A stretch of DNA of 64,000 nt from Oikopleura dioica (lineage: Eukaryota; Animalia; Chordata). Shown in pieces: positions 5,883-22,090 of the stretch. The position numbers and the translations under genes are program-made. The stretch covers positions 2,914,001-2,978,000 of the forward strand of contig OU015566.1 of assembly GCA_907165135.1 (NCBI GenBank), given 5' to 3'. The notes beneath the pieces were generated by a model that was not told the origin of the DNA, did not search any database, and was given only the letters and a program-made list of their open reading frames with translations. Numbering within the stretch: the stretch's first letter is position 1; every line of letters starts with the position of its first letter.

Positions 5883-6696
5883 ATGAAATTTTTTACAATT
5901 TTCGGCTCAGCTGTTTTCGCTCAAAAATGCGAAAAACCGACTGACATTTCGAACCCCAACTCGGAGCTTCACTGCATCGGTGCCGGCGGAAATTGTGGAA
6001 TCAATGAGGATTTTGCGAGAAAAGGATGGCAGGCATATTTAACTGTTCCCGGACAAACGGCTGAAAATACTGTCTGGACTGAGGTAAGCTTTTCAGATGA
6101 GCTCGGTGAAATACCCAAATTTTAGGCACAGAAATACTGTGAGTCCATGGGCATGAATCTCGCGACTGTTGCAAACGAGCAAGAACACAAAGATCTCATG
6201 ACATACACTGTCGAGTACGGGAAGTGCATGACGAATGTTACCAACCGACCTGGCAATTTCTTCATTGCTCTCAATCGAGTCAATAATCATGATGAGTTCA
6301 AGTGGACTTATCGCAATGCTCCTGGAGAAGAGGTAAAATTTCAAAGATGAAATTTGAAATGCTCATTTTAATTCTAGAAAACCTGCCTTCCATACGAATT
6401 CGGAGACGGGCTCAACAAATTTGAAACCGAAGACAAGCTCATCGACAAATTTTGCGTCTACATGGAAAGTGGATCTGGCTCAAACCAGTCGAAAAACTGG
6501 AAACAAGTCAGTTTTTTTTCTAATAGGAGCTTATTCGATGACCTCTTAGGTTGATTGCAACAAGAACCCAACTGGAACTCAAATTGGCTTTGTCTGCCAG
6601 CCGCGAAGAGATGTAGAAGAATGCAAAAGTGGCGCCGCCGGGTTTTCTTCCTTGAGTGCAATGATTTTTATGCTTGCATATTTTTTGATTGAATAA
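5883..6696 (+). CDS. C-type lectin domain protein with signal peptide and probable GPI-anchor signal (4 exons)
   Basis: WTEAQKYCESMGMNLATV, FFIALN, FKW, CVYM, WKQVDC, FVCQ motifs. Hydrophobic C-terminus SGAAGFSSLSAMIFMLAYFLIE*. Confidence 0.85.
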
Positions 6697-6916
6697 ATCC
6701 GAATATAGTACAGATGATCAGAGCATACACTCGATCCTTTCTGAACTTGGCTTCTATTAACGAACAAGAGCGAATGAGCCATCAATTATTGATGATCAAT
6801 ATGTGATTTCAAATTTGTTCAAACGATAAAATCCTGAATAACAGAATATATCAAGTAAATTCAACACCGTATAAAAGCAACAAGAGGCGTTCTTATTCTT
6901 TAATATTTTGGGTAAA

Positions 6917-7135
6917 ATGAAATTCTATTTTCCCTTTTTCATTTTCATCTGGCTAACCAACCCATACCTCGGTGACACTGACAGTGACTTCGTCAAGAAA
7001 CTCAAGGTAAATTTAAAGGATAAATTCAGTTTAACAAATTCAAAGCTCCGTCAATGGCGATTCAAAATGCGGCTTGCACGGCACAATTCCCATCACCGTC
7101 ACAAGAACTCACATCGTCGCATGCGAATTTTCTAA
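6917..7135 (+). CDS. Cationic His-rich secreted peptide family, member 1 (59 aa)
   Basis: Exons 6917-7006 and 7046-7135: MKFYFPFFIFIWLTNPYLG-DTDSDFVKKLK|LRQWRFKMRLARHNSHHRHKNSHRRMRIF*. TATA at 6870. Three paralogues nearby. Confidence 0.85.
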   Translation: MKFYFPFFIFIWLTNPYLGDTDSDFVKKLKVNLKDKFSLTNSKLRQWRFKMRLARHNSHHRHKNSHRRMRIF

Positions 7136-7408
7136 ATATCATTCAAAAAATAATTTACGAATAAAGATTTTCGAAATATGAATGCTAAGGTATTTGCTTT
7201 TGAAGATAATTATAGAAAACAATTTGCTTGAACTTTAAAGAAAGGCCTTCTCTGAAGACAAAAATAATTTTGTTGACAGTTGTCCCTGAAGGTCTGTCTT
7301 CCCGTACGTATAAATGACAATGCCGAGAATAACTGAATATGTTAACAACTGTATATAAGAAGCAAAATGTCCAATTTTCAATTGATATTGGTTTCGAAAT
7401 CTATTTTG

Positions 7409-7656
7409 ATGAATTCATTTTTTCCCTTTTTCATTTTCATTTGGCTTACAAACCCGTGGCTCGGAGATACTGATAATGAATTTGCTAAAAAACTCAAGGT
7501 AAGGAAGAAAGCTGGCGACGTATTATTAAAATTATGTTGGCTCAGCTTCGTCAAAATCGATTCAAAATGCAACTAACTGGACACAACTCCCAACACAGTC
7601 AGAAGAATTCTCATTCAAAGCATATGCGCATGCTAAAAAGATCATACTTCTCATAA
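7409..7656 (+). CDS. Cationic His-rich secreted peptide family, member 2 (66 aa)
   Basis: Exons 7409-7498 and 7546-7656: MNSFFPFFIFIWLTNPWLG-DTDNEFAKKLK|LRQNRFKMQLTGHNSQHSQKNSHSKHMRMLKRSYFS*. TATA at 7352. Confidence 0.85.
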
Positions 7657-7860
7657 AAAATTTCTCCTGTACCAAATAAACTAAAAAGAGAAGGTCAAAC
7701 CCAAACACAAATGGAACGCAAAAACACAGAAGCTATCAATACCCGTCCTCCGATTTTTTAATGACAATGTTTTCAATAACAAAAACACAGTATATAAGAA
7801 GCCGAATGACCTTCAAAGAACAAGCAATCGTTCCTTTTTTTATTTTTTTTTCTCGTTAAA

Positions 7861-8086
7861 ATGAAAATTTATCTTCCCTCGATTATTCTTATTTGGGTAA
7901 CCTCCCCGTGGCTTGGTGAAATTGACAATAATTTTGCTAGAAAACTCAATGTAAGTTTCGAGACAGGAAAAATATTGAATGAATATTAAGCTTCGAATAT
8001 GGCGATACAAGATGCACCAGGCTCTGCACAAAGCTCACGATAGGCACAAAAGTAGCATCTACAGACACATGAAAATATTCAAATAA
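7861..8086 (+). CDS. Cationic His-rich secreted peptide family, member 3 (61 aa)
   Basis: Exons 7861-7950 and 7991-8086: MKIYLPSIILIWVTSPWLG-EIDNNFARKLN|LRIWRYKMHQALHKAHDRHKSSIYRHMKIFK*. TATA at 7791. Confidence 0.85.
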
Positions 8087-8142
8087 TCATTATTTTTATT
8101 TTCTTCTTTCTGGATACAAAATAAACGAACCAACAGCAAAAA

Positions 8143-9306
8143 CTAATTTTTGGTAAGTGCGCAGCTCTCATTAATTGGAACTTTGACTTGAACTCGGCAA
8201 TGAAAATGATTCCACCTGCTGCAGACGATATCATTCCACCACGGCCCACCCCACTCTGTTGATCGCAAACTTTCGGCGCAATTTTCGTTTCCACCCGTTT
8301 TGTCTGGCTGTTGGGGGAAAGGAAGCCAATTTTCCACGGTCTTCTCGGCACCAGTCGGATTGTACCATTTTTCATCATTTCCGAGAGTCATTCCAAGCCA
8401 CTCTCGTCGATCTGGTTTGATGTAGTTGTAATGCTTTAGCTCAGCCTCATTGTTGAAGAAGGGTAAATCCCCTCCGATCTGGTTGCATCGCTTTTTTGCT
8501 TTTTCAAATTCAAGTGGAAAGGGCTGTTTTTTGAACTCAATGCAGGTCCTCTTGGCCGTGACTCCCTAAGGAACAAAATTTATAATTTCAATTGAATAAA
8601 ATCTCTTACCAAATCACAGCCCTTCTCCCACTCATCAGAATTGGTCCACCAAAGAGAGGATTTTGAAAGTTTTCCATTTGCACAGCGGGCTTGTCCATTT
8701 ATTTTGCCATTTTTGCATTCAATATCGTAGTACGCGCGATAATTTTTCGTTTTCTCGTTTCGATTTGGGAGTATTTTTCTTGGAACGAGTCTTCCTTTCA
8801 CGGAAAGTTTCGAGTTAATAGTCATTGCTTCAGAAAGACATGGAAAATTCTTGAGATGAAGGCATTGCAAACGCTTATTTTCTTCAACTTCACCTTTTCT
8901 ATAAAACTTGAATCAAAAAATAAAATCTTCCTTTACCTTTTAATTCTCACGATCCTGCTACCATCGTCAAAGCACTTGATGAACAGATTTGGTTCTCTAC
9001 ATCGCTGGGCTTGGCAACCTGTTAAGAAAACCTGAGTCAGGTAAGTTCTCTGAGTCAGGTTTTCTTCACAGGTTGCCAAGCCCAGCTTCGCCCCCATGTT
9101 GGAAAAGAATTATCATCGCACTTTGGTTGACACTTCAATTTACCCAGAGCCGTCTTTGTCCCAAGATCCTTGCAATCCCAGAAGCCATTCTTGATCGAGT
9201 ATCTATACCAGCTGTTATTGATCTCTTTTGCTTTTTCATAACATCGTTTCGGAGAGTCGATGGCCTCACAAATTTGAAAAGAAAAAAAGAAAATAAGTAA
9301 GTTCAT
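8143..9306 (-). CDS. Secreted protein with Cys-rich N-terminal repeats and a C-terminal QPD-type C-type lectin domain
   Basis: Signal MNLLIFFFSFQICEA. CTLD motifs AKKRCNQIGGDL, WLGM, QPD, ENC, WWNDIVC, FHC. Exon 1 is interrupted by a foldback insert at 9004-9086. Confidence 0.8.
9004..9086. mobile_element. 83-bp foldback (MITE-like) insertion in the lectin coding sequence
   Basis: GCTGGGCTTGGCAACCTGTTAAGAAAACCTGAGTCAG is inverted, almost perfectly, at the right end. Confidence 0.75.
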
Positions 9307-9649
9307 GACTAGCAGAGAGAAATTGAAAATGATCTGCTTACTGAATTCGAGCGCAAGGAGTGATTGAAATACGAGATGGATTATTTGACTTCATGTGCAA
9401 GTTCTTCAAATCTGTTAAGCCGCTTTCAAATGCAGAAAAACATCCCTCCTCAGAACTTCTTCAAAGATGTCTTTCTTGAAATAAACAGAAGTTCATTTCG
9501 CCGCAGAAAGGACAGAACCTATCAATATTGCGGATATAATAATCGATTTTTCGACAATAATTTTTTCAATAACAAAATGGTGTTTATAATTTACCCTCTG
9601 TATATAAGGTCACGTATTCCATACTGGAAGAAACACTCGATTTTATTAA

Positions 9650-9857
9650 ATGAGATTATATTTTTCTTTACTTATTTTTACCTGGGTGACAAATCCCTCA
9701 CTCGGCGATACTGACAGTAACTTCGCTAAGAAACTCAAGGTAAAAAATCAATATAAAAAGGTAACCAAATATTATTTTGTTTTAGCTCCGTGTTTTGCGA
9801 TACAAGATGCTTCATCCGGACAAAAATAACATGCGAGTTTTTAAAAAATCCTCCTGA
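9650..9857 (+). CDS. Cationic secreted peptide family, member 4 (53 aa)
   Basis: Exons 9650-9739 and 9786-9857: MRLYFSLLIFTWVTNPSLG-DTDSNFAKKLK|LRVLRYKMLHPDKNNMRVFKKSS*. TATA at 9601, AATAAA at the stop. Confidence 0.85.
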
Positions 9858-9902: not shown

Positions 9903-11777
9903 TTATGCCCATTTTAAAGGAAAGCAAAGATTAAGTCTTCCGTAGTCAGTTTTTTCTTCTCTTTCTTCTATCAACCTCAAATTCTCATCGAGTTTATTTT
10001 GAAGTCTGGCGATGATCGGCTTTGCCCATTCTTTCTCAAACTGATTAACAGTTTCGTCTGGATTTTGCTCGAGATTATAAAACTCGGAAATTTCCGGGAT
10101 GAGTTTCCACTTGTTCCATCTGATCGATTGAATTCCTTGGTAGACGGCATGAGTCATGATCCACTGCGGTCCTTTGATCTCATCAGAGGCGCCGGTCAGA
10201 AGAGGGAGGAGGGAGCGGCTGTCGGGCCCTTCGTTGCAGGAGGGGGAGTAGTTGATGATGTCGGAAAGAGTTCTAGAGAAGAGTTAATTAAAGAATATTT
10301 TTCAAAAGGAATTTACCTGAAAACATCGACATAGGAGACGACTTTGTCCTCCACTGTCTTCGCCGGAAACTGCTTTGGGTACCACCACATGAAGGGCAAT
10401 CGATGACCTCCTTCCCAGTTGTAGTTTTTAAACCCCTTCAATTGCCAGTGCTCGCCTCCAAGGTCGATGGCATTTTGAGTGTGATTGTAGAGAATTCTGT
10501 TGAACTCGCTGGAATGGTCCGCTCCGTTGTCCGACATGAGCAGAATCAAAGTATTGTGGATTTTGCCCGTTTCTTCCAGGGTTTTGAAGAGATTTCCGAC
10601 GATGTCGTCTGCCTCGGCGATCATGTCTCCAACGACACCGGCTTCGGTCGTGTTTCGGAAGCGAAGGGGGGAGTTGAAAGGACGATGACCAGAACGCATC
10701 CCGTAGTAGGTGAAGAAAGGAGTGGTGGAGGCTTCTTGCGAGCGGATGAAATCGAAAAGCTTGTTGGAAACGACCTCGTCCATCGTTCTGAAAATGGCTC
10801 GGAAGGGCAAAAACTGAAAGAAAATTACCTAGAATCGTAGTTTTTTTGCGCGACCATCGATCTGGGATAGTTGCCCATCAGAACCTCCCCAAAAGTTTCT
10901 TCCTCGAACCAGGGAGCAGCAACGTAAGCCCCGACCCCAAATTCTTCTCTGTTAATCCTGGCAGTATCGTTTCGAATAGAGCCTTCCGGGAAGGTCCGTT
11001 GAATAGCCCATTCAGTAAAGGGCTCAGTTTGGAGACCGTTTTCGAAATATCCGTTTGGTTGGCAGCAAGGGGAGCCTAAATTTTGGGTCAGAAAAGAAGA
11101 ATGGCGATTCTAGCGCTTGCCTGAGGTAAATGAATAGTCGTAGTCAAAATCTTTTACTTCCGAAACCGGTTTCGTATAATTTCCCGGAACTTGATAAAGC
11201 CTTTTCTCATCTCCAGGAGTTCTGCTTTGCGGATTTTTATAGCTAATTTTCTTCCATTCTAGAACCTTTCTTCTTTGTTCGGCTCGTTCTTCAGGCGTCT
11301 GGTCCATATTGAGCGTTTCAGTTTTCAGCGGCTGCGATTTTCCGAAAATTCCAGTCGTGTAGCCCGCTTTTTTGAACATTTGGCCGAGGTGGGGTTCGCG
11401 GCCGGCTTTTAGAATTCGGTTCTTGCCCTCTAGAAAATGGTTAAGGGAAACGAGGGTTCAGGAAGGGGATATCTTACGTTGCATGGAATATCGGCCTGTC
11501 ATGAGCATGTATCGACTCGGTCCGCAACGAGCTGAACCAGCATGAGCATCCTAGAATAAAAAATCCGATGACTCATCGGCGATGAGATTTTTATCGTTAC
11601 CTTGAAGTTGACTCCTTCTGTCCCCAATCTATCAATATTCGGCGTCGGGACTTTTCCTCTCGCTTGATTTACTCTGAAATCCCCAACTCCAAAGTCATCT
11701 GCAATCAAAATGATTACATTTGGTCTCTCATCGCAAAAAATATTTGAAAAAAGAGAAAAATATTTTGCAAGTTTCAT
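9903..11777 (-). CDS. Arylsulfatase (formylglycine-dependent S1 sulfatase), multi-exon
   Basis: PNVIILIADDFG, TPNIDRL, DAHAGSARCGPSRYMLMTGRY (CxPSR), GYTTGIFGK, NTLILLMSDNG, EGGHRLPF, WKLI and FYNLEQNPDE motifs. Confidence 0.92.
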
Positions 11778-20295: not shown

Positions 20296-21819
20296 ATGAA
20301 GATTGCCCCTTTTTTGACTCTCGCTTCTGGCAATGCGCTGGATATGAAACGACTGCTTCCTGGAAACTTGCTCAGAGAAGCGCGAGAAAAATTTCAGATT
20401 TTTGACCCGATTCCAGAGGGAAGTTTTGGGGCAAAGCCGGTGGGGGATTTGAAACTTCCCCGGGGCGATTCTTCGATTGAAAAAGCTGATGAGCTTTGCA
20501 AGGTGAGATTTTTAGGAAGAAGGTCTTGTTGTCTATTTTTTCTTCAGAAAAATTTCGGAATAGAAGCTTACTCAGAATATCTTGCTGAAGGAGCTCAGGG
20601 TGTCGTGTACAAATGCGTCAATGATGTGACTGGAACAGCCGTTGCTCAAAAAATGTATAAAAACGTAAGCAACCTACTTTTGTAAGAATCCTAATAAACA
20701 TTCCTTACAGCCGTATTTCATCGACACCGATCGCGCGCGTCAAGTCGACCAAGCAATGGGTGACACGGGAAATGGCCCGGAAGTGTACGGCTTTGAAGAA
20801 TACAAACCCGACATCGGTGACATCGACTGCTGCGATTTGAGTGACTGCGATCCATTCTACGAAGGTTGTGCTGATTGCTCGTCTTGCCCGCAAGATGCGT
20901 ACTTTTGCAAATTCGAGGAGTTGCTCTTTGGAAAAAGCTTGGACAAGATTGAAGAACTGGGGGCGAATCAGCCGGAGATTTATCGAGTTGCTGCGAAACT
21001 GTTTGCGAAATTGCATACTGTGACGGAAGAGGAATTGCCGAGAAAGATGGACTACTGCTATCGAAGCTGGCCATGGAATACCAGGTAGATCCACATAAAC
21101 GATCTGTTGTTATCGATCTTTTTCTCAGAGCAATGGAAGCCGCCCTCAACAACTGGGGAACCAAGACCAGGGAATTCGTCACCTCCCTCATCAAAGAACA
21201 CCCTATCGAAGCTGGAACCATCAAGATCACCAATATCGACGAGTACATGGCATTCCTCTACGACCTCCAATACGCGACAATTTCCCCTGGTGTCTGGGCA
21301 CACAATGATCTTCACCCAGGAAACTTTTTCGTTCGGGACGCGCCGGAGGGCACGCCAATGGAGGAACGATTGTTGTTCATTGATTATGACAACTCTGATT
21401 TTGGACTGAGGAATTTCGACTTTACCTACTATCTCTTGAACTCTGACTTTTCAGATGAAGTCCTCTACGAAGACTTCTTGGGTAAGCTCCTCCTTTGTGC
21501 AATTTTTTTATTTGATAAGCTGCTTACGCTCGGGAATATACGAAAATTGGAGCCCGAGAACTCACTTATGAGCAGCTGAATCAAGAAGTTTTCTGCAACT
21601 TTCCGTTTGCCTACATGAACAGGGTCTATCTTTTTGCAACGTATGGCGGGGAGAATTTCGCGAAGCTGTATTACTATGGATTCATGGTTTGGGCCGAAGA
21701 ATATGGAAACGGGAATGGTCAGTTGAAGAGAAATATTTCGATAATTAGTCCTTTTTTTAGTGAGCTGCCCGTGGGAAGGTCGATATCCAGAGTATCCAAA
21801 GTGTTACCCAATTGCTTGA
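20296..21819 (+). CDS. Choline/ethanolamine kinase-like (APH/ChoK fold) protein with a predicted signal peptide and Cys-rich insert
   Basis: LAEGAQGVVYKC, VAQK, Brenner motif HNDLHPGN, LLFIDYDNSDFG.R.FDF. Six exons with GT-AG introns. Confidence 0.8.
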
Positions 21820-22090
21820 ATCATTTCATTTTCTTTCATTTATCAATAAATTTGATTTGTTTGTTCATTGAGAATATTTCCTTAGTCATGATCATTGCAT
21901 AAGAACTTAGCGGATTGCGTTCTGCGGAGAATCTTAATGCAAAATTAGTTGACAAAACTTGATAATCAGGCTTTTTTCCCGATGCTCATTATATCTTCCG
22001 GAGTATTTTCAAAACAGAGCAGAATCAATCACAATCATTCCCTCGAAAGTCGTAAATTTGATTCTCAAGAAGAGCAGAAAAGCCCAAATT

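Follow-up and report, generated by a model that had tools for sequence, protein, structure and literature searches.

A tandem family of small cationic peptide genes in the larvacean Oikopleura dioica with a possible role in host defence

A 64,000-nucleotide stretch of the Oikopleura dioica genome (assembly GCA_907165135.1, contig OU015566.1, positions 2,914,001 to 2,978,000 of the forward strand; hereafter the window) contains a cluster of four two-exon paralogues that encode short cationic peptides. The four copies lie on the plus strand, with start codons at window positions 6917, 7409, 7861 and 9650, and are real, selected and probably co-regulated peptide genes. The explanation that we favour, with confidence just short of even, is that the cluster is a tandem gene family specific to larvaceans, whose products are small, cationic and secreted and function in host defence. 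Larvaceans are without haemocytes, the cells that make antimicrobial peptides in ascidians (PMC5465252), and a literature search found no antimicrobial peptide described from larvaceans. These animals filter and eat bacteria, and whether they rely on epithelial defence peptides is of interest. The four products are candidates for the first antimicrobial peptides of this animal group, and marine peptides that tolerate salt are of applied interest. Should the products instead belong to the house or mucus, they would represent small components that earlier proteomic work probably overlooked. These prospects are tempered by the fact that lineage-specific cationic peptide families are of a familiar kind.

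Gene Models

The gene models were derived from the sequence and a repeat search of the window, which corresponds to G000:C4:2914001-2978000 in the searched genome (64.28 Mb, 19 contigs). In all four copies exon 1 is 90 nt long (30 codons) and is followed by a phase-0 GT-AG intron. The first exon of copy 1 (6917–7006) encodes a hydrophobic leader, a W-x-T-x-P-x-L-G motif, a short acidic spacer and a dibasic site; following an intron of 39 nt (7007–7045), exon 2 (7046–7135) encodes a cationic core, a His-rich variable segment and, ahead of the stop codon, the closing M[RK]-hydrophobic motif. Copy 2 (7409–7656) consists of exon 1 at 7409–7498, a 47-nt intron at 7499–7545 and exon 2 at 7546–7656, while copy 3 (7861–8086) consists of exon 1 at 7861–7950, a 40-nt intron at 7951–7990 and exon 2 at 7991–8086. 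In copy 4 (9650–9857) the exons at 9650–9739 and 9786–9857 flank a 46-nt intron (9740–9785). The products of copies 1 to 4 are 59, 66, 61 and 53 residues long, respectively, and contain no Cys. A pattern combining the end of exon 1, the intron and the start of exon 2 has four matches in the window, compared with 0.00 expected from shuffles. A first-pass annotation of this DNA had proposed these four paralogues, and on recounting its start codons, exon and intron lengths, Cys content, charges and His counts all agree with ours. It had also reported that the mechanical list of open reading frames (ORFs) misreads the genes, and in each of the four copies the listed ORF does extend into the intron.

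The intron of copy 1 is in frame and free of stop codons. The sole relative found outside the window, a copy 1 orthologue (P0001) identified on a 685-bp contig from an ocean metagenome (L012), has an intron of 40 nt at the same position that breaks the frame and contains an in-frame stop, which places the copy 1 intron outside the coding sequence. This bears on the alternative that the copies are not peptide genes, but rather non-coding repeats or pieces of the N-terminus of a glycosyltransferase (QTMAN_N/GTDC1). When copy 1 is read through its intron, the resulting ORF matches the Pfam domain QTMAN_N (PF12038; 168 positions) with E=0.007; however, the score of 16.6 bits falls below the curated cut-off of 25, the single exons have no match, and the match needs an intron that breaks the frame in copies 2–4 and in L012. 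The apparent homology was rejected as an artefact of intron read-through. The true QTMAN/GTDC1 gene lies on another contig (G000:C1:5957973-5958497, L011; PF12038 E=1e-48), and its second exon has no BLASTP similarity to the peptides. The non-coding repeat alternative is ruled out by codon-level selection and by the promoters, both described below. Consequently, this alternative is largely refuted and retains a very slight probability.

Selection and Promoters

The metagenome contig L012 carries, in order, the 3' end of the same glycosylphosphatidylinositol (GPI)-type lectin that precedes the cluster in the window, a TATA box and the copy 1 orthologue. The last exon of the lectin is 86% identical between the window and L012, and the linkage of this lectin to copy 1 is conserved. 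Comparison of exon 1 of copy 1 with that of L012 reveals 12 synonymous and 5 non-synonymous changes, corresponding to a synonymous rate (dS) of ~2, which is near saturation, and a non-synonymous rate (dN) of ~0.07. The paralogue pairs have dN/dS values of ~0.1–0.4. By these codon-level estimates, the peptide family is under purifying selection.

The presence of a TATA box upstream of each copy, noted in the first-pass annotation, is borne out. The boxes are located at -47, -57, -70 and -49 relative to the start codons of copies 1 to 4, whereas the background frequency of a TATA box at such a distance is 1.6% of ATGs in the window. That of copy 1 (6870–6877) has a counterpart in the L012 orthologue, and those of copies 2, 3 and 4 terminate a shared promoter block (7316–7358, 7763–7797 and 9553–9607, respectively; all on the plus strand). 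The upstream elements GA[CT]AAT and AATAAC, together with the TATA box, are kept in all five sequences (copies 1–4 and L012), and a strict pattern built from the block has three matches genome-wide, all of them at copies 2, 3 and 4, with none in the control. At the other end of the genes, AATAAA occurs 0–34 nt past the stop codon in all four copies.

The consensus TATA box of O. dioica is a hallmark of promoters that are sharp, adult-stage and tissue-specific, and most testis-specific genes use the motif TCTAGA (PMC6389100). The testis motif is absent from the peptide-gene promoters, and the idea of a protamine-like sperm protein was rejected on this ground and because a hydrophobic leader is present. 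As a separate observation, the hexamer ATCAAT is located ~125–135 nt 5' of the start codon in four of the five promoters (6781–6800, 7735–7740 and 9521–9526 in the window; 268–273 in L012). We take this motif to be Onecut/HNF6-type-like, which would hint at endodermal expression, although a literature search found no support for the assignment.

Layout and Conservation of the Peptides

Charge and hydropathy were counted on the concatenated exons, and the five sequences (copies 1–4 and the L012 orthologue) were compared by position. The hydrophobic leader (approximately residues 1–13) is followed by the conserved W-x-T-x-P-x-L-G motif, an acidic spacer with a charge of -2 to -3 (residues 20–26), and a KK or RK dibasic site at residues 27–28. 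The cationic-aromatic core occupies residues 29–38 and precedes the variable, often His-rich segment and the closing motif. The net charge following residue 19 (the Gly of the LG pair) is +10, +8, +8 and +7 in copies 1 to 4, and the part following the dibasic site comprises 25–38 residues with a charge of +7 to +11.

The first-pass annotation likened the family to precursors with a conserved leader and a variable mature part. The distribution of invariant positions does not support this, as only 2 of the 11 positions in residues 1–11 are invariant, compared with 14 of 27 across residues 12–38 (5 of 8 in residues 12–19, 4 of 11 in 20–30 and 5 of 8 in 31–38), which includes the cationic stretch. 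On this count, the conserved unit is residues 12–38, which spans the intron and contains the cationic-aromatic core. The concentration of invariant residues in one block, the strong purifying selection and the order of leader, spacer and dibasic site would also suit a signalling peptide (hormone, neuropeptide or pheromone) in which residues 12–38 or 29–38 bind a receptor. However, the C-terminal Gly that would signal amidation is absent, and there is no conserved second dibasic site to close the core, as later dibasic pairs have no conserved position and exon 2 of copy 3 has none. A basic segment of variable length is unusual for a ligand and there is no match to a known family, leaving a signalling function distinctly improbable.

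The His-containing segment is the variable part of the peptides, ranging from 7 to 18 residues with one to five His, and copy 4 has almost none of the His-rich stretch. The earlier description of the family as His-rich, with activity dependent on pH or metal, holds in its first half for copies 1 to 3 (5, 4 and 5 His, respectively). It fails as a description of the family, as the segment is variable, copy 4 has a single His, and the zinc-binding motif HExxH is absent from all five sequences. Because copy 4 has one His, control by pH or metal through His cannot be the defining property of the family, as judged from these counts.

Searches for Relatives

The search queries were individual exons, alignments of exons or the copy 1 ORF that reads through the intron. 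In the O. dioica genome, profiles of exons 1 and 2 and a DNA pattern recovered just the four copies, with other matches at chance level; this count is a lower bound, so that the family has at least four members. A search of 5.8 billion proteins returned P0001 as the sole match, and a HMMER search over 1.84 billion representatives returned P0001 and three matches made of repeated stretches of 10–11 residues. No further relatives were found in the JGI metagenomes, no match to the peptides was found among PDB sequences or in the ESM Atlas, no Pfam family was matched by single exons, and the core motifs were not found in a motif search of the literature. These results uphold the earlier view that the family is undescribed. 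An exon of the neighbouring QPD lectin likewise drew no candidate in the same libraries, which points to poor coverage of this lineage, so that the missing relatives are weak evidence on other larvaceans. Based on these searches, the peptide family is apparently undescribed and lineage-specific.

Comparison with Known Defence Peptides

The linear cationic antimicrobial peptides (LCAMPs) of Ciona, which include Ci-MAM, Ci-PAP and KH.S921.1 (PMC7387483), are also tunicate products, made as Cys-free precursors of 50–100 residues by a small multigene family. Similar to the present family, they possess an N-terminal hydrophobic leader and a cationic segment rich in Arg, Lys, Trp and Phe that passes the same physicochemical filter, which requires an 18-residue window with a hydrophobicity of 0–0.6, a moment of 0.1–1.0 and a charge of +3 to +10 (PMC7387483). 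Between 11 and 22 windows per O. dioica sequence pass this filter. In contrast, by inspection the 21–23-residue signal consensus of Ciona does not resemble the leader of the family, and the anionic C-terminal helical pro-region found in 17 of 22 Ciona candidates (PMC7387483) has no counterpart (no windows of charge <=-3 after residue 19), the short acidic part being located N-terminal to the cationic part instead. Furthermore, the family has a dibasic site whereas the Ciona precursors are without basic processing motifs, its core is conserved whereas that of Ciona is hypervariable, and, unlike Ciona, its host is without haemocytes.

The clavanins, clavaspirin and styelins of Styela clava resemble the family as linear, cationic tunicate peptides that contain His and Phe (PMC5465252, PMC5198042). 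They have no sequence similarity to it by Pfam or PDB searches, and their His residues lie within an amphipathic helix, whereas those of the family lie in a polar, variable and dispensable segment. Clavanin precursors carry an anionic C-terminal extension, and the O. dioica peptides have neither such an extension nor the amidation Gly. The histatins of human saliva share a polar, weakly amphipathic segment rich in His, Lys, Arg and Ser as well as tandem genes, but contain the HExxH motif that the family lacks (PMC7559477). Any resemblance is convergent and compositional, as histatins are, to our knowledge, primate-specific. Their precursors of ~55–65 residues are similar in length to the peptides described here.

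Frog-skin precursors are similar to the family only in the order of parts, in which a signal, an acidic spacer, a dibasic site and a mature peptide follow one another and the conserved preproregion occupies its own exon. Cutting of frog precursors occurs at KK, RR or RXXR sites (PMC7387483). The family differs in that its spacer is only ~7 residues long, KK or RK takes the place of KR at the dibasic site, and the intron interrupts the putative mature peptide after its second residue; homology at the sequence level was not found. The peptides may act in the manner of linear cationic defence peptides, although they are members of none of the families compared.

Proposed Function

In the host-defence explanation, the leader would direct the polypeptide to the secretory pathway in adult epithelial cells of the gut, the endostyle or the house-making epithelium. 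Removal of the leader, and probably of the acidic spacer as well, would yield a peptide of 25–38 residues with a charge of +7 to +11. This peptide would bind anionic microbial surfaces mainly through charge and aromatic contacts, and less as a strongly amphipathic helix. In copies 1 to 3 the His segment may make activity responsive to pH or metal, although it would be dispensable. An indel-rich segment and tandem duplication are typical of defence peptides. Also in favour of this explanation are the coding constraint, the intron supported by L012, the TATA-type promoters that lack the testis motif, the small Cys-free products that pass the Ciona filter, and the basic sites at which frog precursors are cut. 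A bolder version, which we consider possible but hold more tentatively, is that this is the first appendicularian host-defence peptide family, epithelial and in a haemocyte-free animal, and that it is active at seawater salt. Its layout would differ from those of the tunicate peptides described to date, with a fixed cationic-aromatic core and closing motif on either side of an exchangeable His-rich segment that sets the dependence on pH or metal.

Several results weigh against a defence function. The Ciona filter is permissive, as 80 segments passed from 165 sequences (PMC7387483). The strong conservation of residues 12–38 suggests a specific binding partner rather than an arms race. No NF-kB-like site was found upstream of the peptide genes. 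No junction reads were found over these genes in four RNA runs, which derive from a divergent strain, such that most reads are <90% alike even over the adjoining sulfatase. A few RNA reads at 7796–8167 were rejected as proof of expression, as they fall in bins containing T-rich tracts, have opposite mate orientations and contain no joint.

The leader presents a further difficulty, as none of the possible signal-peptidase sites obeys the (-3,-1) rule across all five sequences. Cleavage after LG, implied by the first-pass annotation, is a poor fit because position -3 is aromatic in four of the five; the best-fitting cut, after residue 21, likewise satisfies the rule in four. The poor fit and the invariant W, T, P, L and G in the would-be cleavage region count in favour of an uncleaved signal-anchor or membrane-associated micropeptide, whose hydrophobic N-terminus would stay in the membrane while its basic tail contacts lipids or a protein partner. 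An AlphaFold2 model of exon 1 that contains two helices broken at Pro (low confidence, pTM 0.24) is in line with this alternative; all the single-exon models are low-information helices, including one single helix with pTM 0.29. However, the hydrophobic stretch spans ~11 residues, the maximum 19-residue hydropathy of 0.85–1.35 in copies 1 to 4 is low for a transmembrane helix or membrane anchor, and a variable tail and tandem amplification are more typical of secreted effectors, which makes a membrane micropeptide rather doubtful. Among proven Oikopleura house proteins, many are not recognised by SignalP or have a cut predicted within residues 14–20 (PMC3390340 Table S1). The atypical leader is thus compatible with secretion, which is probable.

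The peptides are also weakly amphipathic. Helical amphipathicity had been proposed earlier as a check on the family, and the best moments of the windows that pass the Ciona filter (0.27–0.43) are not above those of shuffled sequences, with no excess of helical (p 0.35–0.90) or beta (p 0.11–0.19) amphipathicity. A beta-hairpin or self-assembling model based on alternating residues was rejected for the same reason and because AlphaFold2 returned the single helix of pTM 0.29. Validated Ciona peptides include some with moments down to 0.12–0.17 (PMC7387483). High positive charge combined with weak amphipathicity would also suit a secreted polycation with a structural or adhesive role, which binds or cross-links the anionic (sulfated) polysaccharides of the house or of endostyle mucus and is not antimicrobial. 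House inflation requires sulfated proteoglycans, and C-type lectin domains are found among the proteins of the house (PMC3390340); additionally, the promoters are of the adult TATA type and a sulfatase gene adjoins the cluster. In contrast, the literature motif search did not recover the core motifs, and the acidic spacer and dibasic site are pro-peptide-like, suggesting latency and a bioactive product. We regard the polysaccharide-binding role as unlikely, though somewhat more probable than the other rival explanations.

The first-pass annotation placed the peptide family in what it described as a mini immune locus. Both neighbouring lectin genes are without the TATA box and the strict promoter pattern of the peptide genes, a further point on the opposing side, and co-regulation of the lectins with the peptides was rejected given the absence of the shared block. 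Because C-type lectin domains occur in house proteins too, an immune locus cannot be concluded from the neighbours, although the GPI-type lectin and copy 1 are also linked in L012.

Neighbouring Genes

Both lectin neighbours are C-type lectins by Pfam. The gene at 5883–6696 (plus strand) has four exons, a signal peptide and a hydrophobic C-terminus, with a Lectin_C match to exon 2 (E=1e-4), and we infer from its sequence that the product is GPI-anchored. The second gene (8143–9306, minus strand) encodes a secreted lectin with QPD and WND motifs, whose domain exon (8143–8565; Lectin_C E=1e-11) matches surfactant protein D and mincle in the PDB; the exons upstream of the domain exon are an inferred model. 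This QPD lectin lies between copies 3 and 4 on the opposite strand and head-to-head with copy 4, whereas the GPI-type lectin flanks the cluster upstream, so that the earlier description of the peptide genes as interleaved with C-type lectins is accurate for the QPD lectin only.

In the QPD lectin, the N-terminal part (8610–9306, minus strand) is rich in Cys and has no Pfam family match. An 83-bp palindromic repeat resembling a miniature inverted-repeat transposable element (9004–9086) sits inside the apparent first coding exon of this lectin, flanked by a CGA direct repeat. This repeat has 79 strand-level matches genome-wide and ends in AG on the lectin strand; it may be spliced out via a non-canonical donor, or the QPD lectin may be disrupted. 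The region 5' of the lectin start codon (9307–9336, minus strand) lacks a TATA box and carries a pyrimidine tract and AG, a sequence arrangement that suggests trans-splicing or an intron in the 5' untranslated region.

Directly downstream of copy 4 is a multi-exon sulfatase gene (9903–11777, minus strand; Pfam E=1.5e-20), which is expressed in the divergent-strain RNA runs. Further along the window, ORFs at 20296–21902 with a signal-peptide-like start at 20296 contain HNDLHPGN and IDYDN motifs, which we take to be choline/ethanolamine-kinase-like.

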